Shown in pieces: positions 5,736-51,601 of a stretch of 64,000 nucleotides of DNA (its first letter is position 1; each line of letters starts with the position of its first letter). A program made the translations under genes and the position numbers. The DNA lies in the NCBI GenBank assembly GCA_047495785.1, contig JBLDXI010000020.1, forward strand, positions 1,860,001-1,924,000. The letters run 5' to 3'. Under the pieces are notes generated by a model. It did not search any database. It saw only the letters and a program-made list of their open reading frames with translations, and was not told where the DNA came from. This DNA is from Lepidodermella squamata (taxonomy: Eukaryota > Animalia > Gastrotricha).

Positions 5736-6089
5736 CTAAACCGCCTGCAGATGGCACTTTTGTTGTACAAGATACGCAATTCTTTCGATAAGTTCGAGTT
5801 TAGAGCATCGGTAAGCTTTGATGTAGTCACTGAAAATTCCGTTGAAAAACTTGCTCGACTGATAGCGCTTGACAAACTTGTCGGATGGTATGTAGTCGAC
5901 TTCGAAACAGCTCGCGCAAGCTTGGATAGCTTTCGAATCAAGATAGCTTCGGGATGAAGGATGAAAGTAGTTCGCTGATTCAAGTTGAACCGCCTTGTTG
6001 TTTGATGGTATTTCCGCCTTCTTCGCTGCAGTGACGGCCAGGGCCACTATCGATACGTGTAAAAGTAAAAGAGTCGTAATAACAGCCAT
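5736..6089 (-). CDS. Secreted 4-Cys family member 1 (long loop, intronless)
   Basis: Signal peptide; CASCF-x32-C-x7-R-x8-C. Confidence 0.85.
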   Translation of the reverse strand: MAVITTLLLLHVSIVALAVTAAKKAEIPSNNKAVQLESANYFHPSSRSYLDSKAIQACASCFEVDYIPSDKFVKRYQSSKFFNGIFSDYIKAYRCSKLELIERIAYLVQQKCHLQAV

Positions 6090-7320
6090 CAGTGAAAAAT
6101 TACAATACCTAAACTTGAAATAAAAACTTGATATACAATAAAACGGAATCGTCTGATAACCAGTTGATCAAACCTGTCGTTCGCAATTGACGTTAACTGC
6201 GTGCCACTTAATTAATTCGCCTTACTGTTTCCTATGCGCCTGATCAGTTGTCACGTTCACAGTTGTTAGTGCAAGATTTTTTACCGCTATCACGTCAATG
6301 TTAGTTATCGTTGATTTGATATTCCGGCGTGGACCCACGTGATGTAAACAGCAAAGTCTGCTGGCGTGAGCTTGGAATTTAAGACAATTCACTGGTGACT
6401 GGTGTCACCTGTCCAGTTCTAAATCATTCGACCAAATTTAGACCAAAATCAATCAATGATAGACATAAGTTTTTATGTAACACGTTGTATAACACTATTC
6501 GTAATTTTCTGAAATTTGAAACAAATTGCACATTATGTCAACGGACTTTAGACCGCGGAAATTTGGAAGAGCCTGGAAAGTTTTGCGGGCCAATGAGGAG
6601 AAACCTCGGACTTGTAAACAGCAAATATTTGTCGCGCAGTTCCAGGGCGCTTTTTATAGCGCATATTTTATACGCGCACGTAGCCTCCATTAAGACTTCT
6701 GATTTCATTAGTCAGTTGTGAAAAACAGCAATATGTGTCAGTTTCGGGTAGCGCGCAAGTTTACAAGACTTTATGTTCATTTAAAAGTGCTATATATCTC
6801 CATCTTTATCTCGGCTGGGATTTTTTGCTATTTTCTTGTTCGACAATTGTCGAAAAGTAATTCGTTCAAAATTCAAATAAAAAGCTATTATTGTTCATAT
6901 TATTCATATTATATGCGTAGGAACTTGAACAGATAAATTGTACCATTATTGCAGAATATAGATCGACAGATACCATTCCACCACGTCAAACTACTCTGAC
7001 ATTCTTACCCGCCTTCAGGAATTTTGGACACAACTGACATGATTCTGATCTCATTGTTTTTCGACGCTATTATGTATCTTGAATGGCTGTTATTAACTAA
7101 AAGGCGAGCAGGAAGCAAACGGGAACGGCTGAACATTTAGGTATAAGATCCTGAACGCCTGAGGTGAGAGATTAATTATTGGCGGGCGTTTCATTGAAGT
7201 TTCTAGTTTCTTGTCATCGTCCTTTGAAATAGCAAGGTGAAATGGACAACTTTTTATTATGGGAACGTTTCTCATCCTTATATAGTTACTTATATAAGGA
7301 CCAGCATTCAGAAACAACAT

Positions 7321-7701
7321 TCATTCCAAGGGGTCGTGAATCGCACACTTTCTAGATCTAAACAATTTCAATCGGTCAATAATTAGCATCTTCGAGCAAC
7401 GATACGCCTTATCCATGTCAGAAAACGCGCTTCGGATGAAAAGTTGGCGCTGCTTGTACCAACTGGCAAACGCCGGCGGCGGAATTCGCTGCAAGCCGAA
7501 ACAACGAGCGCATGCTGTCATGGTCAGGTCGCCCACGTGTCGTTCCAACCATTCTTTGTAGACTCCATGAATGAGGTCGAACTTTCGGCTTGCTCCCTTC
7601 CGATTGGCTCCATCTAAGAACACTCCTCCAGATCTGGATTCTTTTGGTTCTACAGCATTTGTGATGATTAAAAGTAATGAAAACTGAACGTAACTTCTCA
7701 T
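7321..7701 (-). CDS. Secreted 4-Cys family member 2 (long loop, intronless)
   Basis: Signal peptide; CARCF-x33-C-x7-R-x8-C; shares FSDxxKAYRCSK with member 1. Confidence 0.85.
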   Translation of the reverse strand: MRSYVQFSLLLIITNAVEPKESRSGGVFLDGANRKGASRKFDLIHGVYKEWLERHVGDLTMTACARCFGLQRIPPPAFASWYKQRQLFIRSAFSDMDKAYRCSKMLIIDRLKLFRSRKCAIHDPLE

Positions 7702-7918
7702 AATTGATGTAAATCAAAAGCATGGAAATTGAAGACAATATCCAAAATCGATTCTGTAGGATTCATAAAAGTCACCCCGTGACTGCCTCTCGCTCTAAAT
7801 ATCCTTAAGACAATGTCTGATCAGTTTATTAATTTATTTATTTGCGAAGCCGACGTCAAGATGACTACGACGATAATTCACCGTGCACTTCAATTCTCAA
7901 GTTAGGATTAGTCCGTGT

Positions 7919-8338
7919 CTAGTACCTGGTACCATCAGGCCCGCATCGCATTCTGCGAAGATAGGCGATACGCTCAACAACGGGCAACTTAGCGCAACTG
8001 CTAGCCTTGACAAATAGGCTCTGAACAGACCCCATTAGGACAGCTCGAGGATTGGCGGCAATGAAGTCTGAAGAAGGCATTTCTTTGAAGCCAAAACATA
8101 GAGCGCAGGCTCGTTGTGTCGGGATGTCCCAGTTTTCCTCCAGAAACGAACTAATATCTCTGTTCATTTTGTCGTATTTTTCTTTCTTGCTGGCGACCAG
8201 CGCCATGAATTTAACAGCTCTCAGGTTGTCCTTACTCGGCTTCGACTGAGGCGTGGCAGTTCCATAGGCCGGGATGCAATGCCCGATTGCGAAAACCATC
8301 GATGCGCCGATGAAAGCCGTGAAAACGTATGAAGTCAT
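7919..8338 (-). CDS. Secreted 4-Cys family member 3 (long loop, intronless)
   Basis: Signal peptide; CALCFGFKEMPS...CAKLPVVERIAYLRRMRC; TATA-like CTATATAAA ~85 bp upstream. Confidence 0.9.
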   Translation of the reverse strand: MTSYVFTAFIGASMVFAIGHCIPAYGTATPQSKPSKDNLRAVKFMALVASKKEKYDKMNRDISSFLEENWDIPTQRACALCFGFKEMPSSDFIAANPRAVLMGSVQSLFVKASSCAKLPVVERIAYLRRMRCGPDGTRY

Positions 8339-9057: not shown

Positions 9058-9450
9058 TCAATGCTTCAGTGAGCCTTCAAGGCCGCATTTCATTTTTCGA
9101 AGGTAAGCAATGCGGTCGAATACCGGGAGGATGGCGCAGTTGCTAGCCTTGAGGTATTGGCTAGGGACTGTACTAAGAAGAACAGCTCGTGGCAACGAGG
9201 AGAGAAAGTTAGCCGATGGCATCTCTCGAAAGCCGAAGCACAGAGCGCAAGCTTTGGCTGTTGGAGCGTCCCATTGCTTCTCCAAATAAGTGTTGAGATC
9301 TTTGTTCATCAGGCCGTATTTCTCCTTGCCTTTGACCAAAGAGAGAAGTTTCGCACTCGACAAAACATTAGCTTGATCTTGAGGCTCAGCAGACACAGGA
9401 ATGCATAGTACGATAGCCAGGAGAATGTAGTGAGAGAGGGTAGCAGTCAT
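9058..9450 (-). CDS. Secreted 4-Cys family member 4 (long loop, intronless)
   Basis: Signal peptide; CALCFGFREMPS...CAILPVFDRIAYLRKMKC; close paralog of member 3. Confidence 0.9.
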   Translation of the reverse strand: MTATLSHYILLAIVLCIPVSAEPQDQANVLSSAKLLSLVKGKEKYGLMNKDLNTYLEKQWDAPTAKACALCFGFREMPSANFLSSLPRAVLLSTVPSQYLKASNCAILPVFDRIAYLRKMKCGLEGSLKH

Positions 9451-9799
9451 TTCGGCGTAAAAAGTAACTTTTCAAGTGGAATAATGAACCATCCTAGAAA
9501 ATTGGAAGGGTTTAAATGGATGGTCAACTCGAGAGTGGGCAATACGAGTGGGCACCAAGGCTGTTTCTCCAATTTCCGAAATGTTTCGCTTTGAATGCAT
9601 CAATTTTTATATCAAGGCTCCTAGAAGCGTAGGAGCAATTAGGATAGCGTAACTGAAGGAAACTGGAAATAATTGGGACTTCAGAAATTCGCACTACTCA
9701 AGCACGTGGTACAAAGTTTTATTATTCAGAAAGCACATTAAATTGGCTCTAGTCCCATATTTCTTCAAGAATAGGAAGTCGGCGTATCAGCTTGGCTGA

Positions 9800-12700
9800 T
9801 CAGCATTTGGTTGATGGGTACAGCGGCAATTGGGGTTTAGCTCCATAAAAGCCTTTGAAGTGTAAGAATGAAGATCAAAATGTAAACACTACATCTGGGG
9901 TTATGCTTACCATACATTCCGTTGTTTGTTGGCTTCCATTTCATGCTAGTCGCTGTGGCTAGCTTCGGTGACGGTGAATGCGGAGTCGCTGGCCGCCACA
10001 TTGGAGTTTTTCTGTTCACACTCTCCGCAGAAGCATTATTGATCAGCGGCAATACGGCCGCAACTGATTTTTCACGTCTGCAGCATATTTTCGCAGCAGC
10101 AATGCATATCAAATCTACGATTAGTTGAAGGTACTCGAAAAGTGTCATGAAGGAGAAACCCAAAAACAGGCCGAGGATGCCACCAACCCATCCAAGTATA
10201 TCAGAAAACTTGGAAAATGAAAGTTTTCAATGTGATGTTAAGTTTGAGTTCAGATTTTTACCGTATAACTTTCCGACTCGGTCAGGGCGTGATAGTTGAA
10301 TTCCCGATAGAAGATGTACACCTCGCCAAATCGGGCACCGATCACTTCGAGTGCAGCCTTTTTAGCCTCAGCTTGATAGGTCGGTGAGTTTTTCGAAATT
10401 TTCGAGCAGGCCCGTAAGGCCGTTAGCATATCGCCCGATTCGCTTGAGTTGCCGCTGTTAATGTCGTTCGCGACATAGGACAAACTTTGGCAGGTTTTGT
10501 CCGTTTGATTTATTCTCGACTCGAAAATACTCAGTATGTTTTCGCACACTTTTGCCTTTATAAACAATTTGGACACGTACTTGAGATGTCTTCATTTCAT
10601 CGGTAGAAACTCACCGCAGCTTTATACCCAGGCCACATCAAATTAGAAACCTCGCTCGTGAAGGTGACATCGCTGCAGTTGAAATGTCTAAAATTAGTAC
10701 TCCAAGGTACCCAATTCAAAAGACATACTCGCAAGAGTCCGGACAGTCGCAATCGATGATCCTCGCAGAGTAATTTGCGAATACATCCTGTTTGCAATTC
10801 CCTATAATTGGGTGCGATGAGCCAAAATTCCGGCAGACAAAAATAACTTACAAAGAGTTGAGTTTGAGTAGAGGCATCGCTGTACTGTCGATAAATCAGC
10901 AAAGGCGCTGCCAGTATTCGGGTAATCAGTGTCGTAGCACTACAAAGCGATTTCGAATTATGTTAAAACAAAGAAAATGTCAATAAAAAGCTACCTTGCA
11001 TCGTTGCATCACAGCTCTTTGATAGCATGTTTTGTAGCATACACTGGCCGAATAGTCAACATCCATGATTTGAGTGAAAGCGTTCGAAGAACTGTTCGGT
11101 TCGAAGGTTCCCCGCTCTCGACATTCGCTGTATTTTGACGTGTAAAACGTCTCCGATACCACACCTAAGCGCTCACTCGATGTCTTGAGAAATAAGGTGA
11201 ATGTAATCATAGCAAGGTCAGAAATCAAATTACAAATGATAGAGCGATCCTTGTCGAAGTTCCAGGCCTCACTGAGATTCCTCCCTCTTCTGGAAAAGGC
11301 ATTTCAGTCTGATTATGGACCTTGATCCGCCATCCCACTCCAACTGTGCTATCCAAGCATCGCTCATAATCCGTGTTGAGTAAAAGGTAGAGCCCGTAAT
11401 CATCTCCTTGTCTCAATGCCATTCTAAGTGACGACCTCAATAAAAACGAGCTTGGTGAAAAGAGGGAGACATACTTTACCCCAGATTCATCATCTCCTGT
11501 TTTTATATCCCAAAGATAATTGCTACTTGACTTCTTATCTTCCAAACTATAGCCAAAGTTGAACGTGAAACAGTTTCCATGTACTGCATTCCAATGCCAA
11601 GTAACGAAATCACTATATAATATTATAAAATTCCCATAAATTTAGGTTTCTAAATGGATTAAGTAGGCATACTTGTCAATATGGCAAGCTTTGCCGTTGT
11701 ATCTACAACCTAGTATCATGTCGCAAAGCTGATGGCCAAGCTCCCTTCGATCCATATAGTCGACATTAGAAATTATCTCTTGAGTCTCGTATGTTTGATT
11801 GAAGGAATTTTCTACGACCTGAGCCGAAGCACTCGAAGCAATATCTTCCAGAATTGTGGGAAAGAAATTCGGGGCATTCGTTTTAGCTTCCACGGCGTTC
11901 CTAGTGGAGAACTGCTTCGCTAATTGAGTTACCGCGGCTTGTAAATTAGTGTATGACCCGCTATCAATGCCGTTTGAGGGGGTGCTAATTTTAGCAGCAG
12001 CACTGGCCACATTAGCGATGATATCGGAGATTTCTTTCGGATTCGCACTGCTGAGAATGACATTCGCTTGGGTGACTGCCGCTGCCACGTCAGTAGCGAT
12101 TACCCCTGCTTGAGAGACTGCAGCCACAGCAGCACTGGCAACAACATTCGCTACAGCATTCGTCAGATTGTCCGGTAAAGTAACAACCGGATTTATCGAA
12201 GGAGTTGAGGCGAGATTCGCTGCGACATTTGACGCGAGATTGCCTAGTACATTAGACTGAGTGCTGAGAATGTTGGCTTGTACACTGGATAACAGATTGT
12301 TCACAGCGATCGTTTGAGTGCTAGGTAAGTTGGCTGCTAAGCTAGACAGCAGCCCGTCCAGCGACGGAGTGGTTCCAACATTGGCAGCCAAGCTTGACAG
12401 CACGTTAGCCAAAATTATCGCATCGGTTGTTCCTAGATTGACGGTCGGCACTGTAACTCCCGGGATCGTTATTGTTGGGACGGTAACAGTTGGAACCGTA
12501 ACTGCCGGAATTGTTACTGTTGGAACCGTAACACCCGGAACCGTAACAGTTGGAATCGTAACTGCCGGAATTGTTATTGTTGGAACCGTAACTGTTGGAA
12601 CATTAACCGTTGGAATTACTGCAGGAAGGGCTCTTTTTCTCCTAGTCTTCTTTTTCAGCCTTTTAGGAAGTTGGTCTGAACTCACCACCCAGGTCGGATT

Positions 12701-13024
12701 ATTGTTGCAGAGAGTAACAGCTGGGAAAGGAAGTTTCAGCGCTGTAACAGCTTTAACCTTAGTATCAGCCTCCCATTGTAACAAATCGTTCGAAAACACA
12801 ATCATCTGCCAATAGAGGCCGTAGACGCAAAGCGCAATTCCACAGAACCACAGGAATTTTTTCAGCACGCCGTATTGCTTGATAAGCTGCGGTATGCCTT
12901 GAAGACTTGTTTCAACGAAGAAGGTTGCTAGGTAGTTGGAGATATTGACATCTCGTAACGCTGGCTTGTCGTACTCTTCGTTTTGGTCTTTGACAATCAC
13001 GCCGTAAGGTGGCCACAGTTTCAT
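9800..13024 (-). CDS. DEG/ENaC (amiloride-sensitive channel family) subunit, multi-exon
   Basis: TSLQG pre-TM1, TM1, FPAVTLCN, GHQLCDMILGCRYNG, HGNCFTFN, Cys-rich thumb (CYKTCYQ..C.C, CDCPDSC), WPG, TM2 GWVGGILGLFLGFS. The last exon and stop position are inferred. Confidence 0.93.
12434..12613 (-). repeat. 12x 15-bp coding tandem repeat encoding P-[TAG]-[VI]-[TN]-[VIL]
   Basis: Directly visible in DNA and protein. Confidence 0.95.
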
Positions 13025-13556: not shown

Positions 13557-13979
13557 TCAAGTTTCAAATTCCCTTGAGGGGGCAATGTTTCCGCACGTAA
13601 TCGTACCGATCCTCTGCCGATAGTTTTAAACATTTCCGAGTTCTGACTGACCGCTTCTGAAGTAACAGGAAGTTTCGGATTAAATGATAAAGGTTCCATT
13701 AATTGATTTACTCACCCTAAAACATTCACGGCATGAATCCGACGTCAACTTTTCGAAATCTGCCTCAAATTGTTTGAGCAAATGGTCCATGCCATCATCG
13801 GAAGATGCCGGCATATCGAGCCAATCCGTCACTTGCTTGTCCATGATGTTGAAAACTATCCTTTGCAAGTTCTCGTCGTCTTCCTGATGTGATTTCGAAG
13901 TTGGCGATGTTCTGGAGGTGGCGGGTGCCGCTATTGCCAGCAGGGGCAATTCAATAATCATAAGTATCAAGAAATGCAT
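13557..13979 (-). CDS. Secreted 4-Cys family member 5 (short loop, 2 exons)
   Basis: MHFLILMIIELPLLAIA...CRECFR | intron 13715-13657 | KRSVRTRKCLKLSAEDRYDYVRKHCPSREFET*. Confidence 0.88.
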
Positions 13980-16900: not shown

Positions 16901-17192
16901 GCATAAAATCTTGGATAATATACATTACTTGGTATATTAAAATCTCCCTACGCAGGCTGCTTGCGTCATCACAGCGGCTGCGTGTTGTGGAGACAGGTCC
17001 CAATATAAAAATAGGTCACGATGCGCAAGCCGCTATAGCCACTTAAGTGCATTAATGGCGTCATGCGTTGTTCCAAAAAGGCCTTCGAATATTACGTAAC
17101 GGTATATTTTTCGAATTTTTACGTCCCATCCCACTTCCCAGTCATGCAGTTGCCTTTCCTTAGTTTCCTTTAATATATGTAATGCGTAATAG

Positions 17193-18290: not shown

Positions 18291-19818
18291 TCAATAATCC
18301 AGCAAAAACACTGGCCAATAAACGACGTTGAACAAAGCGAATGAAAATGGGAACAAAATGCGGGATACGATATCGATTTGCTTAGCAACAGCCTTCGATT
18401 GCTTCGGATCGTTCCACATGTCGATGAAGCAAGCCGGCGCTGGTATGAAGTAGCAAAAGTGAACCGTATCGCCTGAATACGGCAAATTCGTCTTGCCAGC
18501 CTTCACCGCAGCTTCGTGCCGCTTCTTCTTATCCTCAATGTCCTTAGCTCGGCGGGCGAATTGATGGACAATAGCGAATTGGATGGTTGCCAAGAAAACC
18601 ATCATAATACAAGCCGCAATGTATATGTCAATTGATTTTGCATAGTTGACCTTCGGCAAATCGGCTTGGGCAGTGGCGAGTTGAGTTAACATTGTCATGT
18701 TAGTCGTGAATCCAATCGCAGCTCGGCCGATAGTACTGAAGAGAAAAATTTGAAAAAATCCAGCTTAATCAGCTTTCATCATTCATACCTGTCAATTGCG
18801 AGGTAGAAAGCGATCCAAGAGATGAAAACGGTTAAAATGGACGGAATGTAGTTTTGAACGAAAAAGTAGAACAAATCTCGTTTAAGGTGGAAAGTAGCTT
18901 GAATGCACGTGAATTCGCCGGTTTTCAGCTTTTTCGTACAGTCTTCAGTTGTAATTTTCTCCAAGATAAACTGAGGCAGTTCCATTTTGTCTAAGAAAAG
19001 CAGTTGAACTGGGTCCTTTTTCGCCCACAAGAATGCGAGTTCGGTCTTCGGGTAGCCGTAGCTTTCAACTTGAACCGAACAGCGTTGACGATCGAACGGG
19101 AAATCAAGCAGGACCATAGGGCAAAACAAGGTAAGGGTAATGCGGACACTGTAGAAAAGCCGCCCGTTAGGCTTGATATAGGCGAGTCGGTTCTCAAGGG
19201 TGACATCGTGAAATCGACCGGACTTTTCACTGAGGACAGAAAAAAAATAGATTTAATTGCATTGGATATTGGAAAATCGAATTAAAAAATTACTTTGTGA
19301 AAAATAGATCAGGGACCCATAGTTTGACAGCCTCGGACGCCGGCAGGGTGACATAAGCGAAATTTTTGTGTAAATCAGAACGAAGTCGGGGATCTTCCCT
19401 GTAATAATGTAAAAAAATTAAAAAATTGGGACGCGCATTTTTTTACACATACCATTGCATTTGAAGATCGATATCGATTGTGTAGTCCATTTTTGACTCG
19501 GAAATCGGGCCGAATGACGTGATAATGATGTTACAGGTCACGTTGTCCGCCTGCCCGCCGACATGCGGCCGAAAGGCGCTGCTGTAATTACGCGGGTCAT
19601 TGATCACGCGAAATAAATGAATGACTGGAAAAAATCGGGAAAATTCGGGGAATAATTCGAAAAAAATGGTGATTTTACTTACGGTAATCGGAATTGACTT
19701 CGCCGTCGGCTGGAGGTAGCGCAGACCCGGCCATGACCCAGTCGCGCCACGGGTCATTTGTCGCGCCGCAATTTTGAGCGAAAAAATAGGCGATAAGTAG
19801 AACACAACGCCGAAACAT
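18291..19818 (-). CDS. Cys-loop ligand-gated channel subunit, GlyR/GluCl-like lineage, divergent
   Basis: Signal peptide MFRRCVLLIAYFF, LWVPDLFF, Cys loop CPMVLLDFPFDRQRC, ESYGY, loop C CTKKLKTGEFTC, M1-M4, LPKVNYAKSIDIY. Confidence 0.93.
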
Positions 19819-25053: not shown

Positions 25054-28000
25054 ATGATTTTTGAGGCATTCTTGGCAAGGTGCTGTCTAAAAGCAACACG
25101 CCAACAGCCTGCCGCTGCCAACTTAAAATGCTGGCCGTTGTCTTTAACCTGGATTTTCCTGCTGATTCACACCTCATTTTTACTTCTTTCAAGGTTAGGA
25201 ATTATCTCAAAATTTTTACTATTTTTTACGATTTATTTCTTAGATCCGTGGACGGAGCAGCGGCTCAAAAGCCTGCTAACAAAGCAGCCGCACCTAGTGG
25301 CCATTATCGAAGGTAAAAAATTGGTTATTTTTAGTTTTCATAACATCCGAAATTCATGTTGTAGCATAGCGCATGAATACAAAGTTTCGTCTCTAAATTT
25401 TTCGTCTATTTTTTTCTCACGATTTAATTTTGCCCTTTTTCATGTTCACTCCAATGTCTGTGTTGGACCAATTATTTTGTTGATAATTATAGCGGTCGAA
25501 GTGACGAGGTAACCATCTCTTTTAAAGAGTTGGAAGACGAGAAGCGGTCTCATTATCGACGGTAAAAATTGAAAATTTCATAGAAAATTTCAGATCTTTC
25601 ACTTTTTCGAGAATGTGTCTTCTTTATATATACCTACGTGTGATTTTTCATCATGAATGTTGTTCCACTTCAAGAGTTATCGTACCAACGTTAATCCCGT
25701 TTTGACAAAAAAAAATCTCACTTTTTCATCACGATTCCCGGGTCATGTTGAGTGATTTTTTTAAATATTTTATTGGCGCGAAAAAATAATTTTAAATTTT
25801 TTTAAATTTTTTAACAGAACTCAGTTCATCGAAAAGCTGTTTCATACTTATGATCGAAGAGTTCTTCCAAACCTTGATGGTTAGTTTTGAGATATTTGCT
25901 AATTATTTTATAATTTTTTGAAATTTTCAGGGCCAACCACTGTTAATTGTTCGCTGTTTATCAATAATTTCGACTCGATTTCCGAAGTCACCATGGATTA
26001 CGCCGTGGGTGTCTACCTGCGACAAGCGTGGGTCGATCCTCGTCTTAGGTTCGACCCGCTTCAGAACAACAACGAATCGCTAGTAACACTGGACGCGAAA
26101 TCATTCGACAAGCTATGGGTGCCTGATTTGTTTTTTACAAACGAAAAACGTGCCTCTTTTCATTCGATAACCGTTCCTAATCGTCTCATGTAAGAAAAAA
26201 ATGACCTAGTTATCGTTTTAGTCTATCGACAATTTTTGTGTTTGTCGAAAATCAGACGCCTTAATCCAGCCGGTACCGTGTTGTACAGTGTTCGGCTTTC
26301 GTTAACTCTCAGGTAAATCCTCGAAATAAATGTGTTTATTTCATGTGAATCCTTGCTTTTTCCGTTATACAGTTGTGTGATGGACCTTCGAAAGTTCCCG
26401 TTGGATAGCCAAGTTTGCACGATGATGATTGAAAGCTGTAAGTTACTATTTTTTATTGCACCTAATAATCTAGAACAATTAGCAATTTCCTTCCTGGATG
26501 TCTGTTGCTAAGGACGCATTAACACTTAGCATCTTAGCAACTGAGGTCAAAAAGCTAATAATCAAAAATTTCCGGGTAATACTTTTATAGTGCACTAAGT
26601 TATGAATAATTTAGTGTCCCAAAAAGTCACATTTTCGACAATTTTATGGTTGAATTGACTGACCGAAAATTCTCAGAGGAATGATTAGAGCTTATGATGG
26701 AAATCACGCGGAATTTTGGGGAAATCTTTTCGTATTATTAAAATTGATAATAAATTGTAGTAAAGTTTCTAAATAGCATCGTTTAGCCATAAATCACTGT
26801 TCCACTATGACCCTTCAAAGTTTTAACAATATAATTTCGTTTGATTTCCAATTGGGACATGATCATTCCGTTAAGAAAAAAATGACCGTTAATAACAAGG
26901 GAAAAGTGCGGTCTGGCGAAATTTTCGACATTTTGAGATTTCGATGGCGCTTTCAAGGTTAGTGAATGAGGAGTCGAACGATATAAAGAAAGAGGTTGAT
27001 AGTCATCAGGGTTACTGAGAAAATTGTCTTCAAAGTTTGAGGGCGCGGAAACTGCTAAAATTTCGCAAAATGCGCGCATGAAAAATCAAGTTTTTTATTG
27101 CATCAATTAAGAATTCGGTGCGCAATAAATTATTATGTTATTTCCTCATGCGCCTTTCGACATTTTTTGGGTCATCTGAGGTTAGGAGTCTAGCTAGATA
27201 TTCAAAAATTTTGATGGAAGCCTTTTCGGCGACTCATTCGGATATCCCGTCTTGGAGATGGATGGGGGCCTCCTAGAGGTGTGACTTCCCGCAATTCTAA
27301 ATCATCGAAAAAAACTGACCCAGAACATCTTTTGAACGGTGAAATGATTGTAAATTGAGTTTTTGTTAGTTAAGGAGGATTTTTAAATTCTTTTTATAAT
27401 TTTTTTCAGATGCATATACAACGGATAAAATCATCCTACAATGGCGATCCGACCCGCTCGAAGTGTCCGAAACGCTGATGATCCCGCAGTTCAACCTGCG
27501 GACGTTCGACTTTGCCGACTGCTCGAAGCGGTACGCGACGGGCAACTTCAGCTGCTTGAAAGCGAGCTTCTACCTCGACCGCGACGTCGGCTACTACATC
27601 ATCCAGACGTACCTGCCTAGCGTGCTCGTCGTCGTGCTGTCGTGGGTCGCCTTCTGGATCGACCCGACCGCCGTACCGGCGCGCGTCACCTTCGGTGTCT
27701 TCACTACGCTCATTCTTTCAACCATGTCGTCGAGCGTGCGCTCGACACTGCCGCGCGTCTCCTACGTCAAGGCCATCGACGTCTGGATGTCGGTGTGCAT
27801 GTTTTTCGTGTTCACTGCTCTCATCGAATATGCAATCGTCAACGTTGTGCTGCGCCAGAAGCCGAAGAAGCCGCCCAAGCCTGTTGTGCAGAGCAGCATA
27901 GCTCAGCAGAATATATCGTCGCCAGCCATGCGTGGCCGCCTCGCTACGACGGCCGTCACCGCCAGCCGCACCCCCCACGAGCCGACCAGCCCGGCGTCGT

Positions 28001-29373
28001 CGCACCTCCTATCGTCGCAAGGCGAGCCGTCCGATCACGGTGAAAGTATACGCTACCCGACTACGTCAGCCGCGGATGAGCGCAATAAAGCCTACTACCG
28101 GGGCAATGCAAGCAAACAGATAAGCAATAACAGCGAGGTGTGGATCCCGCTCGAAAACGTCGCAATGTCCTCCTTAAAGGTATAAAATAGATCTTTCACA
28201 AATAAATTTAACCTAGATATTGGGACATTGACCTATTAATTATTGAACAGTGTGTATCGCATGCAATTCAGCAGCCGAATTTTTGGGCGGAAAGTTTGAA
28301 AATAAGCTCTCAAAAATTAGTGACACATTAATTATTTAGAATGGGTCTAAATATTTACACCATCAAATTGGAACTAAATTTAAGCTTTTTAATTTTCCGA
28401 TATTATGTGTTTGATCGATATTTCCTTGTACGATCGATAATGACTTTTATTTGAAAATTTGAGAATATTTAACACCGTATTTGTTCTAATATTAACTTCG
28501 TCGCTAATAATCGCTCATCCCTAATAGGAACGAGGGGCTAGTCGTTCGAAACCTGAAAAATGAAAAATCCACCAACAATTAATTTTCGAATTTCCGAATT
28601 TCGGGATTGAAATTGTTATAGCCTGGCATGGGAATTATAGGAATAAATACGGTATTTCAAGAATCGATATTCAAAATCGATACCAGCTTTACAGCCTTAA
28701 ACCTCTTAACCTCTAAACTTGGAAAACCCATTAGTGCTGGAACCTTCAACTTTCCAATTTTTCCTAATTATTTACCGAATTTCTCCGCTCAATTATAAAA
28801 TCAAGGTAATATTTTTCGGTACTCAATTATTATCCGGACTTGGAGCTAAATTTTCAAAAACATGAATGACCTCGAAATTCGAAGAAAGACGGATACTGGA
28901 CCTTCAAAAGGTTCAATAAAAAGGTTCAGGATATAAACTAGCTGAAAACTGAATGCTGATTTATGAAGTATATTTTTTTGATAATTTTTTAGCATCAAGT
29001 TGTGCCGGAACATCAGGGAGAGACTTCGGTGCCCGTGCCGCCGCGAAGCATCCCGCCGAGCAGTCTGGCGTTGGCGCAGGGTGTCCCACCGGGCGGGATA
29101 GCCGGCGACGATCATCAGGAGACGATAACAAATGCTGCTGCTGCTGGTGGCCATGTACAGGTTGTAGACAACGATAACAATTTGCTGCTGATGCGCGGCC
29201 CATCGCACCCGTTGGACCTATGCTTCTATTGGCACCGAGCTATGACGCGCCTCTCCGAAATGGAGGGCAAGGAGAAGGGGCAAATGGTTGAGAATTGGGC
29301 GCGCAAAATTTTTCCACTCAGTTTCGGCTTTTTCAACGTCGTCTATTGGGTCGTCTATCTCTACTACATCTAA
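25054..29373 (+). CDS. Cys-loop anion channel subunit, glycine-receptor-like
   Basis: YDRRVLP, VYLRQAW, LWVPDLFF, CVMDLRKFPLDSQVC, CSKRYATGNFSC, PAR motif, LPRVSYVKAIDVW, M4. Start codon less certain. Confidence 0.93.
26882..27328 (+). repeat. Diverged interspersed repeat A, copy 2 (intronic)
   Basis: Similarity to 17193-17610. Confidence 0.85.
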
Positions 29374-38318: not shown

Positions 38319-38751
38319 ATGAATCATCTTCTGAGCGCAGTCTTTCTGATGACCCTTGCGATTTGCATCAACGCGGAAGTTGAAGCACAGGTAGATCAAG
38401 TTCCGGAGGTTACAGCTGGCTCGATCAATCCGCAGCCTAGTATGGGAGCCAACTACATTTCAAGCGTTGATGACGTCGATTCATTGCTGGCCAATGACAT
38501 CTCCGCATTGTCAGACGCAAATCTCGAGGCTCTGCTCGCCATGGTTGAGTTGAACATTAAAAAGCTGAGTATGCAACAGTGCAATCAATGCTTCACGGTA
38601 ATTTTCATTCCTAACTTGATAGGCCTTTCCTAATGTGATTATGTTTACTTGTTAGGTTGGAAGCAAGATGATGCAGCGATGCGTTGGTATGAAATCAAGG
38701 TTGCGGAAGAACTACATCAAAAAGTTTTGCCCTAAAATGAATGTCGATTAA
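38319..38751 (+). CDS. Secreted 4-Cys family member 6 (short loop)
   Basis: Signal peptide...CNQCFT | intron 38598-38655 | VGSKMMQRCVGMKSRLRKNYIKKFCPKMNVD*. Confidence 0.9.
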
Positions 38752-38979
38752 GTTGAATATTTTTACAATTTTAAGTGCATGATTGAGTGTAGTCGTGACA
38801 ATTAATCAGTATAATTTGATAGATTTAGAAATGTCCAGCCTGGTGCTGTTATCTGGAACCTTCCCTTTTCACGCCTAATAAATGTTGACACATGAGTCCC
38901 TGAGACTGAGTCATCCATGTGATTTCAACGAATAAAAGCGCAACTTTTGAGTAAAACGTTTTTCCGATCTAAATTCCTA

Positions 38980-40485
38980 ATGGAAAATCTGAAAGGAACT
39001 AGATGCGTGGTCTGCAGCAAACCTAACGACAAAGTGCGATGTGGAGTTTTTGCCTGCGAAGCTTGCAAGGTTAGTAGATTTTACGTGAATTCCATCGTTT
39101 CTTATTTCCGTTTATCACAGAAATTCTTCGTAAGAAATACTGAGGAAGCCTTCAACTTGAAATGCTTCACAGGCCTTGGAAACTGTCAGATCATATCGCA
39201 GCAAGGGAAAGCACCATGCACCAAATGCCGATACGTCAAATGCTTGGAGGTTGGGATGCAGGTGAAAGGAAGTCCTAACGCTGGATTGGCCCTTCCAGCG
39301 ACATTACCCGAAAGCATTTTGCTGCCAGCTACCCGCCCAGTATTCCCTCATCAAGATTCCGTACCCAGCATAATTCAAGGGCCAGAAATGCATGATGCGA
39401 TGATGTTGGAAAACGTCCTTCAAAGCATTATGAACTCTCATCGATCGTTGACGGGGTTGGAATCCGTGAGTTTGCCCGTATAATCAGTCTTTCGTTGTGG
39501 ATATTTGCTGATTTCAGCTCCCGATGTCATCAAATGTTCCAACCAGTGATAGCAGCCATATTTACTGGCAAACATGCATGAAGCACTTTAATGGTAAAAT
39601 TTCCACCTTAATTTTGCTCGCTGCCCTAATTTCAGCTTTAGTCATGTCCTCCATTGTGGTTTCTTACATCAAGCAACTTCCCGGGTTTCTAATGCTGCCA
39701 ATGACAGATCGGTGTCAGATGTTTGGGAAAGCCATGATTCCTATTGCTGTAGTAAGACTTTCCGCAGCAGCTGCTGCGCTAACAGGAACCGGTGCTAGAC
39801 CGCCAACTTTTCCTTTCTTCGGCGTGAACGATGTCAATATGGGCGAGCTGCTGTTTCACTTTCCATTTTTGATTGTAAGTTTGTTCATGGCGAATTTTCC
39901 CGTTAATAACTTCCCTTTAGCAATCTCTTAAAAAATTTCAGGAGGTAGCGAATGTTTTGTCTTCGTGGCAGCCGACAACAGCCGAATTAGCGCTTTTAGA
40001 GGCGTGCTTATTCTATCAAGGTAAAGCTGACATATTTCGCATTGTGGGGTAATAAGTCGGTCACTGTCAATTATAGCGGGACTGTTCAGTTCGGTGAAAA
40101 TCGATCAAGTGTCGTTAATTCAGGAGGCGAACAAGTGGATTGAGGACTGCTTGGGTGCATTCCTGTCATCTATGACTCAGGATAGTTGTGTCATCCGGCA
40201 AAGAGTACGTTACCCATAATTCATATAAAATCTCCATAAACGATATGACGAACACAGAGCGCTTATTTTCGAGCTGTACTTGACTTGGTGAGATTCGCTG
40301 CGGAAAGTCATGGCGACACAATGATGCGCTTCAGGATGGCAAGGCCTGATCATTTCGACCAAGATCAACATCGAGTGTACTCTGAAATGATAAAGATGCT
40401 AAGTAGCAGCAATCCATCTATTGCTTCATCATTGGAAAAATCGCCATTCAGCAGTCCTTCCCCATTATTCGATATATCTGAATGA
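38980..40485 (+). CDS. Divergent nuclear hormone receptor (one C4 DBD plus LBD)
   Basis: CVVC...CEACK|KFFVRN...C..GLGNC...CTKCRYVKCLEVGM; LBD signature YIKQLPGFLMLPMTDR; several ~50-nt introns. Confidence 0.9.
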
Positions 40486-41351: not shown

Positions 41352-41732
41352 ATGAAGTACCTCCTAATGATTATCCTGTCTAGCCTACTAGTATGCAATA
41401 TTTTCGCTAGTCCCATTGACCGGACGAGTGGCGACTTTTTCGACGATGATCTCGATGCTATTGATGAGACCATGGGCTATGACAACTACGAAGATATTGA
41501 TGATAACCAGCTCTCCGATCTGATTGATCTGCTAAACACCAAAATCGAAGATTTAGGCGAAAAGCAGTGCAGACGATGCTTTAAGGTAACATCTTTTATT
41601 CGTAATTAAAAAATGTCTCTTACGTCATCTCTCATTCATCAGTTTAACCCCGCCATAGAAGCAACATGTTTGGAGCTTCATGGCTCTCAGCGAGCTAATT
41701 ATCTGACGGATAACTGTGGCAAGGAGAAGTAG
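41352..41732 (+). CDS. Secreted 4-Cys family member 7 (short loop)
   Basis: Signal peptide, Asp-rich region, CRRCFK | intron 41586-41642 | FNPAIEATCLELHGSQRANYLTDNCGKEK*. Confidence 0.9.
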
Positions 41733-42133: not shown

Positions 42134-42525
42134 ATGCTACGCATCCTTTTACCCCTGCTCATCTGCTCGAGTTTGAGTCTGGTAACGGCACAGTATTCAA
42201 ATGCCCTGCCGGAACAAGTGAACAATTCTGGTGCTCTGCAGATTCATATCAAAGGAAGCTTGGCCGCCCTGAGTGAAAATGACCTCGAGGACTTCTTCTT
42301 CTTCGTGCAACAGCGCTTAAACAACTTGACTGCATCCGAATGTGCCTCGTGCTTCAAGGTAACACAGATCCTAGATAAATTTTGATCTAAACTGTTTAAA
42401 TTCTATGCTAACAGGCGAACAAGAACAAGCAACAACTGTGCCAGTCGCTGACAAGCATCAAACGGGCTCAATTTATTGCGAACAACTGTCCGAATCGTCG
42501 AGGCAAAAATTTTGGAGAAGCTTAA
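42134..42525 (+). CDS. Secreted 4-Cys family member 8 (short loop)
   Basis: CASCFK | intron 42359-42414 | ANKNKQQLCQSLTSIKRAQFIANNCPNRRGKNFGEA*. Confidence 0.9.
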
Positions 42526-43555: not shown

Positions 43556-43970
43556 ATGCAACGACGACTCTCCTTTATCATGTCAGTAGCTGTAATGTTG
43601 CCAACCTTCATCGCCGCTAATCCACTGGCTGGAAACATTCTTCTTGAAGTTGCCCCTGACGCCAATAATGGGAGTAGCCCTAAAGCCGATCAAGCCGATT
43701 CTGAAGTGCTGACACTTTCACAAATTGAACAGGAGCTCGAGCCACTGTCTGACAGTGAGTTGCAGCGATTTCTCGACTTCGTTGAAGAGCGATACAATAT
43801 GCTGACAACTGAGGAGTGCAATAAGTGCTTTGGGGTAGGTTGCTTCATTCGCTGTATTCCTTTTTTATTTTGTTGTTTTTGATAAGGTTGGATCATTGCA
43901 AGCTCAGGAATGCCTCATGCTGCCACCTGATGAGAGATCGCCGATCATCCGCAGTTATTGCAGGCCCTAA
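43556..43970 (+). CDS. Secreted 4-Cys family member 9 (short loop)
   Basis: CNKCFG | intron 43835-43886 | VGSLQAQECLMLPPDERSPIIRSYCRP*; TATAAATA ~100 bp upstream. Confidence 0.9.
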
Positions 43971-45691: not shown

Positions 45692-46088
45692 ATGACTTCT
45701 ACAAAATTAATTTTTGCTCTTTTAGTCTCTCATCATTTCTACTGCCTGGCCAGGGGCGAGAGAGAACAGAGTCTCCAGACCAGGCACAACTTATCACTAT
45801 CGCCTACTGTAAAATCCAGCCTGCGTGAGTTTTTTTATTCAATAACTATTGCGTTAGCTCTGAATTTATTTGGTTTATATAGAAAAGCTGATCAAGCAAC
45901 TAATGCAAGAGAAAGATGTCGACGCACTGACCCATATTGTGCTGTCATTTCGAGTTCTCAATCACCAGAACCGACTGAGGAAGTGCCTGAAACTTCTAGG
46001 GTCCAAGGCGATTTGCGACAACCAAGTCGCTTTCTACATATGGGCACAAATGCTAGCTAAAGAAGTCATGACGGGGAGCGAACTCTAA
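45692..46088 (+). CDS. Small secreted helical protein with C-x9-C, 2 exons
   Basis: MTSTKLIFALLVSHHFYCLA...SSL | phase-1 intron ~45825-45881 | QKLIKQLMQEKD...RLRKCLKLLGSKAICDNQVAFYIWAQMLAKEVMTGSEL*. Confidence 0.75.
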
Positions 46089-46754
46089 AGGAGGCGAAAT
46101 CGAAATAATTATAAATTGTCAGCTCTCATCAATCAGCTGATGTTGAAAATAAAAGTCAACGACTCACGTCCACTTGTTAGAGCTTTATCAAACTCGATTT
46201 TAATATCTTCCTCCCTCAATTTGGACCCTTCAAGTGGGCCCTTGATAGCAGCAGAAGGGCTTGAAATATACTTTTCGAGTATCATCAGTGGGAGGAATCG
46301 ATGGCTAATCAAAAATTTAGCGGACCAAAACAAAGTTCGATGCACACAATTTTGAACATAGCTTCTAATATCCCGTTCCGATACGTTATCAACTTCATTA
46401 TTTATAGCCACTTATATAATCTATAATAGATGCCTCCCACCTGGTTGCAAGTTCCGGCTATCAATATTGATATAGTAAACACGGCGGAAATAATTTCTCC
46501 CTAGGACAGATGTCTTTATGCCTTGAATCAAATTGCCGAACTTTTTTACGATAAAATCGTTGAAGATTTTGCATCTCATGAATTTAATAATGAGTATCTC
46601 TTTTTTGTTTACACAGATTAATGATTCACTGATTTCTCCGTAGCTGCTGGTTTTCCGAATATATTATTCCTATAATTCTCGTCAGGTCGAGTTCGTGTAG
46701 TTCTTCTTACTTCGTTATACTACGAGTTTTATTAGCCTGGACATTTTTTCTAGA

Positions 46755-47132
46755 ATGCTGACTCAATTGAGTTTAATTGTATTTTGCTTGTTGGCCTTCG
46801 CTTCGGTCGAAGTCGGAGCTCAAATGAAGCTAGCCAGTGAAATAACCGATGCGAAACTTGCGGAAAATGTTCAAAAGATGTTCAAATCCCCGGCTCACGT
46901 ACGGTTATGGAACCGTTTTCAAAGTTTGGTCGACAATAACCGAGCGATTTTAGAAGTGACAGCCCAGGCATGCTCTCAATGCTTTGAGGTCAATTGGGAC
47001 ATATTTTCCATATCCTAAAAATTTAAATTTGCCTATTTTTAGTACAAGTTGGTACTGGCCTTAAAGTGTCTCCACCAACCGGTTGTCGCACGGGTGTCGA
47101 TGATTTACAACTACTGCAGTGTTGCAATATGA
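46755..47132 (+). CDS. Secreted 4-Cys family member 10 (short loop)
   Basis: CSQCFE | intron 46989-47042 | YKLVLALKCLHQPVVARVSMIYNYCSVAI*. Confidence 0.9.
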
Positions 47133-47512
47133 ATTTTTCTAAATAAATGTGATTAATTTGTCGATGTGGGTTAATGCAATTTCCTATTTATAGAAGGGGG
47201 TTTTGTTATAATGAAACAAACTCTGCGAAAATCGATGCCTTGAAATCGATTTTTTATTACGGGGGTTTTAAAATTTTTGTGTGAGACAAACACCTCCGGG
47301 CGCTAGACGCATTAAAGCTGGCAAGCGGTTTACAACAAAATGATGACACCCACAAACTTCCTATTTTCTCATCATGCGAAATGGAGAAATGCATCACGGA
47401 GAGAAAACGGAAATTAGTCGTAATTTGACACACGGGATAATGGCTTTATGTATATCGGTTATGTCTTACTGTGCATTTTTCATAAAAATTGAATATCGCA
47501 TTTTTATTAAAC

Positions 47513-48035
47513 ATGTCTAGTGTAATTAGAATGACGCGAGTGATGTTCCTACTGGGAATGTTGGTTGGTATAGAGATTTCCGCCGAATTAGCTACAGCTT
47601 CGGCTTGGAAGCGACTTTTCACAACGGCCAGTGTTATCGAGCAAAATTCTGCTACCGACAGAAGTCCATACGACTTCTGCACGTCACTGGAGTACAAAAA
47701 GCTGAAGCATAGCATCGAGTTGGCAAATACGCTCAATCAGGCGGTTACTTATGGCAAGAAGAAACCTGGTCTATCTAGCGCCGAGAGCAGCGCCCGCCTT
47801 GCTAGCTATGTGAAGATTCTAAATGACCTGCAAGTGACGATTGGCGAGCTAAGCAGCAGGGCCTGCACGAAACGATACGGGGTGAGTTGCAATTGTAGAT
47901 TGATTCCAGCAAGTTTTTATCGTTTTTTTCCGATTTCAGGCTGATAAGCTTGGTATGCTCAACTGCCTGCGCCGCGACAGCGTTGAACGTGCGGCTTTCT
48001 TACTCGCCAACTGTAAATATGGGAAAAAGCATTGA
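47513..48035 (+). CDS. Secreted 4-Cys family member 11 (Cys2 replaced by Arg)
   Basis: CTKRYG | intron 47882-47939 | ADKLGMLNCLRRDSVERAAFLLANCKYGKKH*; extra upstream Cys (YDFCTS). Confidence 0.85.
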
Positions 48036-49204
48036 AAGAACGAAACTCTGTTACGATAGATTAGGCCGTTTTTGTCTCGATGAGACTTTCATTCAGGAAC
48101 TTTCAATAAAAGCTGGCACATAAAATGTAACGTTGTCGTGTTGGTAAACAGCTGAGATCTCTCGATTTTCTCATCTACGTAATCTGCGTAACTTGAAGCG
48201 TTCAGAATGCATTCGGAACCTTCGTATTCAGTTCAGGTTCATATCTGCAAGATCTTCTATGGCATGGGGTTGATCTCTTGTCAATTTTACAAAAAATTGT
48301 ACGATTGAGCGTGCTTTGAAACTCCATTCACAAGAATTTCCGAGAAGGAAAAAAGATTCCAACATGTCACCTGTCACCTTGAAGTCAATTATTTTCGAAC
48401 TCATCAGCTCATCTTTTTGCTTTCGCTGTGCCTCGGACGTGGCTCCTCGTCCTTCGGACGTTTTTCGCCTTTATTACTCATAGTCCCTTGCAATCAATTT
48501 CCTAATATAAAAAATGTTCGTTTTAGCAATTAGCGATATGATTCATTATCATCCATTTTAAGAAGCATCCAGGCGCCAGATTACAGAACTCCCACAAAAC
48601 CCCCACGACATTAGTGACGCAGGTGCAGGGCGATAATGCGGGAGTAATTCCTTTCATTCATTTATAAGATTCGCCCTGGTGACAAATCCCTCACGTGCGA
48701 TGCCCGCCCTAGAGTTAAATTCCAAGAGTTTTCGTTAATCTAGACCTCCCTCACATAATCTGTGAGTAAAACCACAAGAACTTTCATCAAATCCTATTAC
48801 TTACGCCCTAAAGATGTTCTTCGAAATCGACACCACTAAACCGCACAGCCTGCATTTTATGATGATGAAAAAAGAAAGCAGCTATCGTTACCATTCACTC
48901 AGCCATAAAGCTACAGAAGAGATCTAAAGTATTGCCATGGTGTTCAGCTTCCAAAAGATGTTTGGCACGCTTAAACTGATGAATCATTCATGTCATTATT
49001 TTCAAGGACAGTAAAGGCGTGGAAAGAAGACGGAAGTTATAGTGACGCAGATGCAGGGTAATATTTAGAACGGAAGTCACCCTAGACATCATTTTGTCAT
49101 TTTGGTCAAGGCGCCAGATCAAAAACTCCTACGTTTTCCTCAATTGAAAATTGTCTTGTTGCATCGTTGAAAAATATCAATCAAGCGTTTGTCTCAGTTC
49201 CAAA

Positions 49205-49331
49205 CAGGGCCGGATTATAACTGATTGGAGGCCCGCGGGCACTGTCGAAATGGCGACAATTTTCTAGAAAATGTGTACATTTGCTCCTCATTTCATGCGG
49301 CCCCCGGGCACATGCGTTAATCCGAACCCCA
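49205..49331. mobile_element. Possible degenerate MITE
   Basis: Begins CAGGGCCGGATTA and ends TAATCCGAACCCC (imperfect inverted match); internal GGCCC.CGGGCAC occurs twice. No TSD found. Confidence 0.35.
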
Positions 49332-50108
49332 AGGAAGTATTAAAAGGCCGATCAACAAGGCTTTCGAGGGAGTGACAGTGCGACAGCCACGCAGCGTAAT
49401 GTACCCAGCTTGCCAGTCTCCAAGTTCTCTAAGTTCTGCATGAATCAAAAAGAGTGGGCAAATTCCTAAGATCGGAAACTGTCTCCGTTCAATAATCAAA
49501 TAATTTGGCAAGGTCAATTTTCCAAATATGTCTGCGGGAGAGGATATTGAAATAAGAGACGGTGTGGTCACGGGATGACGTGGTGAAATGATTACTTTTA
49601 TACCTTCAAAGTTTCAAGAGGAAGTGCGAAACAACATTTCCTGTCTCGGTAGCGCAAAATCGCGAATCTACTAGAAACGCGCAATAGACCGTAGACAACG
49701 GTATCGGATGTTCGGAAAGGCGTAGAAATCGTCTGATAACAGGTCAGCTGTACGCGCGAGACAAAATGTTGTTATGAATGAGAACTATTTACTGCCCCCG
49801 GGGTCAAAGAAAGCGAGCGTCTTCCAATCGATTATTCGAGATAGGTTTAAAGAATTGCAGTGAACTAATTCTTCACATATCTGAACTTAGCACTTACCAC
49901 AGACAAGAAGTGTCGGAGGGACTCCGCGTGAGGATCGTCTTCCTGCGGGTCACCTACGCCGAATAGATGCTGTTGTTATGAGAATAAATCACGAATGCGC
50001 GAGCTGTAAACAAGCCACGGTCATGCTGCAGCAATGTTGATAGATCGGGATCGTGTTTCAATACCAGAGAAAAATAGTCGGAGTATAGTCATTCAAAGTT
50101 ATTTCGCC

Positions 50109-50602
50109 ATGGTTAATTTTATCCTATTGCTGTTCATAACTTTACTTGAACTCACCAGAGCTGATGGCGAATTGGTAGGAAATAATTCAGATACACGTGA
50201 TCTGAAAGCTCAATTCAATGGCTTACGATCGATGTTTATCGGCACAGAAACGGGGCTTAATCTTATCGGGAATATCAACAAATTGAAAATGTCACCAGTC
50301 GATGAGGAGAATAACGCAACGAGAGGTTTCGAAAACTCACGCGAGGATTTGAGCTATCTTGAAAGCCACTTCGGCCTTGAGCCGAATATAAGGGCGAAAT
50401 TTGTCAATTGGCTTGAGAATAAACTCAACTTTGCAGCGAAGGAGAAATGCTTAAAATGCTTCAAGGTAAAATTTGTTAAAAAATCACTCTCTTTTCTTAA
50501 TTCTTCGATTTTGAACAGAGGAATTTGTCGAAACTGTTTCCCTGTATCATCAGCCCGCTGAGGACGAAAATTCGGCTTATAAAGAGGACCTGCAAAGGCT
50601 AA
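50109..50602 (+). CDS. Secreted 4-Cys family member 12 (short loop)
   Basis: MVNFILLLFITLLELTRA...CLKCFK | intron 50466-50518 | RNLSKLFPCIISPLRTKIRLIKRTCKG*. Confidence 0.9.
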
Positions 50603-51092
50603 CCTTGTCGGTTATTTATTTCTCATCTTCAATCGACTGCTTTTAAATCACAATTTTTATTATTATTATTATTTGATTCTTAATGCGGAGGTCAAGTGTG
50701 CGCATGCTTAACCTACATTTCTTTATTACCGTGTTCGCTTCAATAAAATGGGCCATTATTTTATGAAACAATTCAAACGTAATTGATTGCTTTAAACTTT
50801 GTTTTTCCTACTCATATTTATACAATGGCGGATGTCGGTTGGAATATATACGATTTTAACAGGGCAGAATGAATGCTGTGTGGGTGTGGTAATTTTCGTC
50901 ATCGCACACTATAATAAATAATAAAAAGGGCTTTTCGTGACACTCCGCAACACATCGATCGTATCATATTATTCGAGGGCGCTAATTGACGAGTACAATC
51001 TGTCGAGACGAGCATCTTCCGACTGCCCGCATTACAGTTTCATAAACAGGATTTATAACAACCCTAGCCTTATTATTTGATTTTTTTACGAG

Positions 51093-51601
51093 ATGGCTAA
51101 CTCGCTTTTGATTACCTTGATCTTCGCAACAGCAGGGCTTGCGGCTTGCAATGAAATTTCAATCGGCGATACCGACCTGAAAGCCAGCTATTCCAACTAC
51201 CTGAAAACTGGCAAATACATCGGCGGGCAGGGCCCTGTTAAACTGAAGGCTAAGGAAGCGTTGGATCTCATCGATCAGCTGGAAAATTTCGACCTTCAAA
51301 GCAGCGACAATTCCGCGAGTGGCGTCGAGTTCGAAAACAGTACGTCAGCAAGAGTTGCATTCCAACTACGTTTTGTCAAATGGATTGAAAAAAACATGCG
51401 AGTAGCGGCTAATAAAGCATGCGTCAGGTGTTACAAGGTAAGAGAGGAATTTTATTTATTAATAAATATTTTTTGTTATTTTTTCCCCGACCGCAGAGAA
51501 TTCCGACGACAATGTTGCAATGTGTATCGCACTCGGATCTGCGGCAAAAAATGACCATGATCCGGAACCACTGCACCGACTACGCAAACGCTGCATTTTG
51601 A
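51093..51601 (+). CDS. Secreted 4-Cys family member 13 (short loop)
   Basis: CVRCYK | intron 51438-51496 | RIPTTMLQCVSHSDLRQKMTMIRNHCTDYANAAF*. Confidence 0.9.

Follow-up and report, generated by a model that had tools for sequence, protein, structure and literature searches.

The gastrotrich Lepidodermella squamata carries a large family of genes for small exported proteins, part of which lies in the stretch of 64,000 nucleotides (nt) analyzed here (contig C20, positions 1860001-1924000; hereafter the window). Thirteen family genes, termed g1 to g13, are found in the window, and searches of the whole genome (121 Mb in 151 contigs) point with high confidence to a family that is restricted to this lineage and numbers at least 49 genes. 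These genes are real, and they are expressed. The family is new to databases, and its small helical fold, as modeled, is without detectable relatives. In all likelihood each protein consists of a signal-peptide-like N-terminus, a fast-evolving spacer and a compact basic helical domain of 50-75 residues.

Cysteine frame, family size and expression

Two forms of the domain share one frame, which consists of a helix, C-x2-C-[FY] and, after a loop, C-x7-[RK]-x7-8-C. In the intronless long-loop genes g1-g4 the loop between the second and third cysteines (Cys2 and Cys3) is 33 residues long. Genes g5-g13 were scanned for a splice pattern in which a phase-0 GT follows C-x2-C-[FY] and an AG restores the C-x7-[RK]...C tail. 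All nine have a GT..AG intron with a phase-0 donor exactly two codons past the Cys2 position, and the spliced sequences display exactly 10 residues between Cys2 and Cys3, followed by C-x7-[RK]-x7-C, with g13 off by one. Thus the preliminary description of the window was correct in assigning to nine genes an identical phase-0 intron of 52-59 nt and a 10-residue loop, and in noting that the basic residue of g13 is displaced by one.

A genome search with g4 revealed two further arrays, on contigs C3 and C9. A long-loop hidden Markov model (HMM), made from 28 domain sequences (alignment A2), was run on all open reading frames (ORFs) of the three array regions and identified 4 genes on C20, 6 on C3 and 28 on C9, with E-values for members of 1e-23 to 1e-31. 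In addition, exon-1 protein queries and the splice-pattern scan detected two short-loop genes 1-5 kb past the right end of the window. The first, at C20:1925259 on the minus strand, has a 59-nt intron; the second, on the plus strand with its start at C20:1928729 (L035:4729-5100), has a 49-nt intron and a basic residue at C-x5-R. The short-loop form is seen in the C20 array only, where it numbers 11 genes. By the genome search with g4, the HMM, the exon-1 queries and the local splice scan, the family is therefore not one of 13 members, as first described, but of at least 49. Identity between paralogs is only ~20-30%.

The long-loop alignment was also compared with the nine spliced short-loop domains in a profile-profile alignment (hhalign), which gave a probability of 97.2% and an E-value of 3.7e-11. 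The first helix with C-x2-C-F and the C-terminal C...R...C helix are aligned, and the one gap, of 23 residues, coincides with the intron site. The long-loop HMM also matches exon 1 of one short-loop gene (E 6e-5). The low HMM E-values, together with the match between long and short profiles, indicate a shared family and not a chance resemblance. Thus the single family with a fixed cysteine frame that had been proposed is well supported.

Expression was assessed with two public runs, X1 and X2, which were compared with window positions 46000-51700; this region takes in g10-g13, with g5-g9 lying outside it. X1 covers only the predicted exons, and its intergenic depth is zero. X1 contigs show GT..AG skips of 58, 53 and 59 nt that, through the stated offsets of the read-assembly tool, correspond to introns 47882-47939 (g11), 50466-50518 (g12) and 51438-51496 (g13), and one contig has a leader sequence at its 5′ end. 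Thus X1, which is labelled "RNA?", is RNA. X2 shows even cover throughout, without those three joints, and is therefore DNA. The splice junctions predicted in the preliminary description are genuine in g11, g12 and g13; g10 has thin X1 cover and its intron is without a junction contig.

In the same region X2 shows two haplotypes of about equal depth, with many differing sites and small indels; of the 94 differences over 5.7 kb, both runs together, 40 are listed. The sequenced animal appears highly heterozygous here. X1 contigs at window positions 49941-50306, immediately upstream of and within g12, show "opposite strands" joints and palindromic loose ends, which may be assembly artefacts or an inverted-repeat variant of the other strain.

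Gene g11 departs from the family frame. Its motif is C-T-K-R-Y, with Arg at the Cys2 position, and at this codon the alternative allele differs only synonymously. An extra Cys is present 66 residues N-terminal of Cys1. Thus the four-cysteine scaffold, claimed for all 13 family genes of the window, is complete in the other twelve but not in g11. In X1, a contig on g11 has at its 5′ end 20 foreign letters that are absent from the locus; they adjoin the AG at 47519-47520, and the leader ends in ...GCGAATTTGATTTGTGTCTAAG. The 20-mer composed of 18 leader letters and AG is present in 38 copies genome-wide, partly in arrays with a period of ~680 bp, and in a gene copy of the leader (L026:1491-1530) a GTATGT donor directly follows the 20-mer. 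Since the 20-mer is multicopy and is followed by a GT donor, the foreign letters represent a spliced leader. Trans-splicing at this AG removes the ATG at 47513, the start first assigned to g11, and translation therefore starts at 47531, which yields a clean signal-peptide-like N-terminus.

Fold, disulfides and search for relatives

Structure models were made with AlphaFold2 of the long-loop protein g4, both domain and full length. The domain, modeled with alignment A2, is all-helical, with a predicted local distance difference test score (pLDDT) of 84.8 and a predicted template modeling score of 0.72. The full-length model has a pLDDT of 80.8, with residues 50-130 mostly at 86-96, and displays in order a signal helix, a disordered stretch, a helix at residues 32-71 that ends in C-x2-C, two short helices and two further helices, with Cys4 in the C-terminal tail. 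The spacer of g4 is modeled as first disordered and then as the start of the ~40-residue helix. The first long helix terminates in C-x2-C-F, and the last helix, between Cys3 and Cys4, bears an invariant Arg. In the long-loop alignment the four Cys and this one Arg are invariant, a Thr, Ala-Cys-Ala, a Phe, a Pro, an Ala and two Leu are near-invariant, and the remaining positions are mostly highly variable. The signal-peptide-like N-terminus described earlier is supported by hydropathy: all 36 members tested have a hydrophobic core in residues 1-30, defined as a stretch of 10 or more residues whose mean hydropathy is at least 2.2. A C-terminal anchor was found in none of the 36.

All four Cys are present in 40 of 51 aligned members. 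Ten adjacent C9 genes keep Cys1 and Cys3 and are without Cys2 and Cys4; they form a clade with support 99/98 in a tree of 45 alignment columns. The sole odd pattern among the 51 is that of g11, which is without Cys2 only. The joint loss of Cys2 and Cys4 points to disulfides, not to a metal site formed by four Cys, and to the pairs Cys1-Cys3 and Cys2-Cys4. As judged from the sequences, these two bonds most likely fasten the long helix, at its end, to the C-terminal part. The two-Cys genes are located at C9:4823962-4839894 (L019-L021), and several have a C-terminal extension bearing [IK]SF[MLT]RQL.

Searches for relatives gave few matches. The 28 full-length long-loop proteins and nine short-loop first exons have no Pfam match even at E<=10. 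A sequence profile search of PDB gave no family match, its sole match being glutaredoxin at E=1, and Foldseek searches of PDB with the g4 models gave E-values above 1. In the ESM Atlas, matches by shape had template modeling scores below 0.5 and no match by features was usable. A homologous-protein search with g4 gave no matches. When 1.84 billion representative proteins were searched exhaustively with the HMM, only four true clusters emerged, P0001-P0004; P0005 and P0006 were rejected as repetitive multi-domain proteins matched on a short Cys-containing stretch. The earlier statement that the genes are not assignable to a described family thus holds across the Pfam, PDB profile, Foldseek, ESM Atlas and HMM searches.

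The four clusters come from two ENA assemblies, and in one of these the contig names include one and the same sample accession. Animal genes are present on the contigs of the clusters, where two of the members are in tandem. The metagenomic source organism has a ThiF-type enzyme 75% identical to the L. squamata copy, and is therefore a relative. The best identity of its family members to any L. squamata member is ~35%. Set against the 75% of the enzyme, this shows that the family diverges fast between species.

Several known families share features with the proteins described here. Saposin-like proteins (NK-lysin, amoebapores, Caenorhabditis elegans caenopores) are also small secreted disulfide-braced helical bundles, often cationic, with C-x2-C in the first helix, and form multigene tandem families in bacterivores that are used against bacteria. 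However they have six Cys in three disulfides and place C-x2-C at the start of helix 1, whereas the present proteins have four or two Cys and place it at the end of the long helix. No SapB_1 or SapB_2 match was found at E<=10 among the 28 and 9 sequences, nor a saposin-like chain among the structural matches. The insulin-like ins genes of C. elegans are likewise clustered in tandem by the dozen, and their products are small, secreted, helical and disulfide-linked, with little identity beyond the Cys frame. Their B-chain C-x11-C, A-chain CC-x3-C-x8-C, three disulfides and C-peptide processing are all absent here, where the frame is C-x2-C ... C-x15-16-C, and no Pfam or fold match to insulin/relaxin (PF00049) was detected. 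Insect chemosensory proteins (CSP; OS-D, PF03392) are alike in having four Cys in two disulfides, a helical secreted chain of ~100-130 residues and large tandem families. Their frame is C-x6-C-x18-C-x2-C with neighboring pairs, but in the present family it is C-x2-C-x10/33-C-x15-16-C with putatively interlocked pairs (C1-C3/C2-C4) and a basic isoelectric point (pI), and there is no Pfam match to PF03392. CHH/ITP, ShK and defensin-type proteins are ruled out by their six-Cys frames, the four Cys and all-helical model found here, and the lack of any Pfam match at E<=10. Membership of the thioredoxin/glutaredoxin-type CxxC proteins is also ruled out, as the model is without beta sheet and glutaredoxin matches only at E=1. 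Thus the frame and the Pfam result agree with the earlier observation that the spacing is unlike that of saposin, insulin, CHH/ITP, ShK and defensin.

Loop forms, gene coordinates and neighboring genes

The intronless long-loop form has two short additional helices between Cys2 and Cys3; the short-loop form is without those 23 residues and has its intron there. At the position of the intron donor, the long-loop codon is Val (GTN) in ~10 of 28 sequences, as read by eye. In addition, part of the intronless long-loop genes contain an in-frame GT..AG of 42-75 nt, in some of them 66-75 nt, starting from the codon that corresponds to the short-loop intron (L016:6367, L022:909, L022:4014 and, in g1, window 5850-5900). 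Because of these two features, the short form may derive by intronization of the segment that codes for the two small middle helices. An internal segment of 69 nt would have become an intron, with the existing Val (GTN) codon two past Cys2 as its donor, and one splicing innovation would have led to a smaller domain and to an expansion to 11 short-loop genes. Coding residue was sought in the nine introns by comparison with long-loop middle segments, and the matches are no better than those of shuffled introns (fraction at or above the observed value 0.09-0.88). The introns thus carry no coding trace, and intronization is therefore offered as a hypothesis. Polarity was also sought by phylogeny, but the backbone of the 45-column tree lacked resolution and gave no direction between long and short forms. 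Besides the two-Cys clade, supported sub-clades are g5-g9 (85/89) and g12 with the first of the extra short-loop genes (100/94). The joint proposition of a disulfide-braced helical fold found only in gastrotrichs, with no solved or predicted relatives, and of a short-loop branch that arose by intronization is, taken together, rather unlikely in our view.

The ORF list and the splice models place the 13 genes of the window at the positions first described, with corrections to the start of g11 and the end of g5. The window has a GC content of ~41%, and introns in this genome are ~55 nt. A nematode source was considered, and no cuticle-collagen N domain was detected; as the control searches were equally silent, this result counts for little. 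The intronless long-loop genes are uninterrupted ORFs on the minus strand: g1 at 5736..6089 (coding sequence including stop; 117 amino acids (aa), HMM E 5e-26), g2 at 7321..7701 (126 aa, HMM E 7e-28), g3 at 7919..8338 (139 aa, 52% identity with g4) and g4, chosen for AlphaFold2, at 9058..9450 (130 aa). The splice-pattern model of g5, also on the minus strand, spans 13564..13979, with exon 1 at 13716-13979, a 59-nt intron at 13657-13715 and exon 2 at 13564-13656; the coding sequence thus ends at 13564 and not at 13557 as first given.

The remaining genes are on the plus strand, and the models of g6 to g10 are likewise from the splice pattern. Gene g6 (38319..38751) has exons at 38319-38597 and 38656-38751 that flank an intron of 58 nt (38598-38655); in g7 (41352..41732) the exons are 41352-41585 and 41643-41732 and the intron is 57 nt (41586-41642); in g8 (42134..42525) they are 42134-42358 and 42415-42525, with an intron of 56 nt (42359-42414). 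Gene g9 (43556..43970) has exons at 43556-43834 and 43887-43970 and an intron of 52 nt (43835-43886). Its acceptor is weak (ATAAG), and an alternative intron of 73 nt would destroy the 10-residue loop. Gene g10 (46755..47132) has exons at 46755-46988 and 47043-47132 and an intron of 54 nt (46989-47042). For the three genes with RNA junctions the introns are those given above. Gene g11 (47521..48035), defined by its junction and leader, has an exon 1 that extends from the ATG at 47531 to 47881 and an exon 2 at 47940-48035. Models and junctions agree in g12 (50109..50602; exons 50109-50465 and 50519-50602) and g13 (51093..51601; exons 51093-51437 and 51497-51601).

Other genes are present among the family members. 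Genes for Cys-loop ligand-gated channels lie inside the cluster at window 18291-19805 (minus strand) and 27463-29373 (plus strand), and a ligand-gated channel gene also adjoins one of the metagenomic homologs. One channel query gave 110 genome matches at E<=1e-10 among 2242 first-look candidates. As channel genes are extremely numerous in this genome, a functional link with these neighbors was rejected. At window 11642-13024 on the minus strand is an ORF of 460 aa, which we take to resemble the N-terminal part of a DEG/ENaC channel; its presumed extracellular loop has P[TA]VT[VI]P-type repeats in long succession. Directly after g6, at window 38947-39483 on the plus strand, an ORF displays a divergent nuclear-receptor-type zinc-finger region (C-x2-C-x13-C-x2-C).

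Selection, chemistry and possible function

Ratios of non-synonymous to synonymous substitution rates (dN/dS) were obtained from five paralog pairs that are unsaturated at silent sites. The cysteine domain has values of 0.08-0.32, and the spacer has values of 0.40-0.67 in the three of the five pairs for which a spacer estimate was usable. In g10-g13 the listed differences between alleles comprise 20 synonymous and 6 non-synonymous changes, the latter all in the spacer. Since dN/dS is below 1 and the allelic changes are mainly synonymous, the genes are maintained by purifying selection. The preliminary description had proposed a hypervariable surface that would point to toxins; the domain values and the confinement of non-synonymous allelic changes to the spacer do not bear this out. 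Pairwise dN/dS and the allelic differences, with no site-level test run, give no indication of diversifying selection such as toxins typically show. The functional classes listed in that description (toxin, antimicrobial effector, pheromone, hormone) are conjectural.

The domains are basic in 32 of 36 members, with a pI of 8.4-10.3 and a net charge of +2 to +12. In g5-g9 the spacer is acidic (-4 to -13), which recalls the anionic pro-pieces of cationic peptides. A conserved T..AC..CFG..IP motif is present in the domain alignment.

The function that we tentatively favor, with a confidence well short of conviction, is that of extracellular, protease-resistant cationic effectors of defense or digestion. 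The proteins are predicted to be exported and have a small, positively charged helical domain that disulfides would brace; some members have an anionic pro-piece, the genes have expanded in tandem and their sequences diverge fast between species. In this combination they are most like the helical effectors that other bacterivores use against microbes or in digestion. Their targets would be anionic surfaces of microbes, either in the gut of this bacterivore or on its body surface, and the effectors would be functional analogs, not relatives, of the saposin-like caenopores and NK-lysin. The invariant residues would serve to maintain the scaffold, and each paralog would owe its own specificity to the variable surface.

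A number of points weigh against an effector role. The domains of g7, g9 and g10 are neutral or acidic, no helix shows an obvious cationic amphipathic pattern of lytic peptides, and no promoter motif, GATA sites included, is shared by the genes after correction for multiple testing. The signal peptides are predicted by the hydropathy criterion alone, and the disulfide pairing is inferred from a single evolutionary loss event. In addition, purifying selection, the invariant Arg and the T..AC..CFG..IP motif would suit a specific binding partner no less than a membrane.

Such a partner is central to a second possibility, rather unlikely in our estimation, that the proteins are secreted signaling ligands, i.e., hormones, pheromones or endogenous modulators of expanded receptor families. 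A rigid scaffold would present a conserved receptor-binding face that includes the invariant Arg, and the variable residues would tune each paralog to its receptor. A cysteine domain under purifying selection with a looser spacer, together with one invariant Arg and several conserved polar positions, is in keeping with this; a ligand-receptor role fits purifying selection and the invariant Arg nearly as well as an effector role does. C. elegans has roughly 40 clustered insulin-like genes, which the present family resembles in size and tandem layout. The genome also shows a very large expansion of ligand-gated channels (the 110 matches among 2242 candidates given above), and channel genes and one G-protein-coupled receptor gene lie inside the C20 cluster, but such channel neighbors are without meaning given the abundance of these genes. 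Ligands are further disfavored by the family sequences, in which no conserved dibasic processing site separates spacer and domain, by ~50 paralogs, which is many for a hormone family, and by the lack of similarity to insulin, CHH or other hormone folds.

We consider improbable a structural role in an extracellular material, for example cuticle scales, egg shell or an adhesive secretion, in which basic domains would pack or cross-link with an anionic matrix. The domains are indeed basic, the long N-terminal helix could serve assembly, and many cuticle protein families are large and tandemly arrayed; the family is also lineage-specific in an animal with lineage-specific cuticular scales. However the proteins are small and globular with a single domain, their sequences show neither low complexity nor repeats, and paralogs of bulk structural proteins do not usually have an identity as low as ~20-30%. 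A role as soluble carriers of hydrophobic small ligands, in the manner of insect chemosensory or odorant-binding proteins (OBP), would also agree with small, secreted, helical and disulfide-stabilised proteins and with ~50 tandem genes of low paralog identity and dN/dS of 0.1-0.3. This role is very unlikely, as a domain of 50-75 residues (without two helices in the short-loop form) leaves scant space for a cavity, CSP/OBP-type carriers are typically acidic whereas the pI here is basic, and the Cys spacing differs, with CSP and OBP matched neither in Pfam nor by fold.

Gastrotrichs are almost unstudied molecularly, and a family of at least 49 genes is among the largest private gastrotrich gene families. 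The two-Cys and four-Cys clades represent a natural experiment on disulfide loss. The short-loop genes offer a clean case of an intron located exactly at the indel that takes out two helices. If the proteins are antimicrobial or are receptor ligands, they would represent a new scaffold class; otherwise they would be one more lineage-specific secreted family of the kind common in poorly sampled animals.

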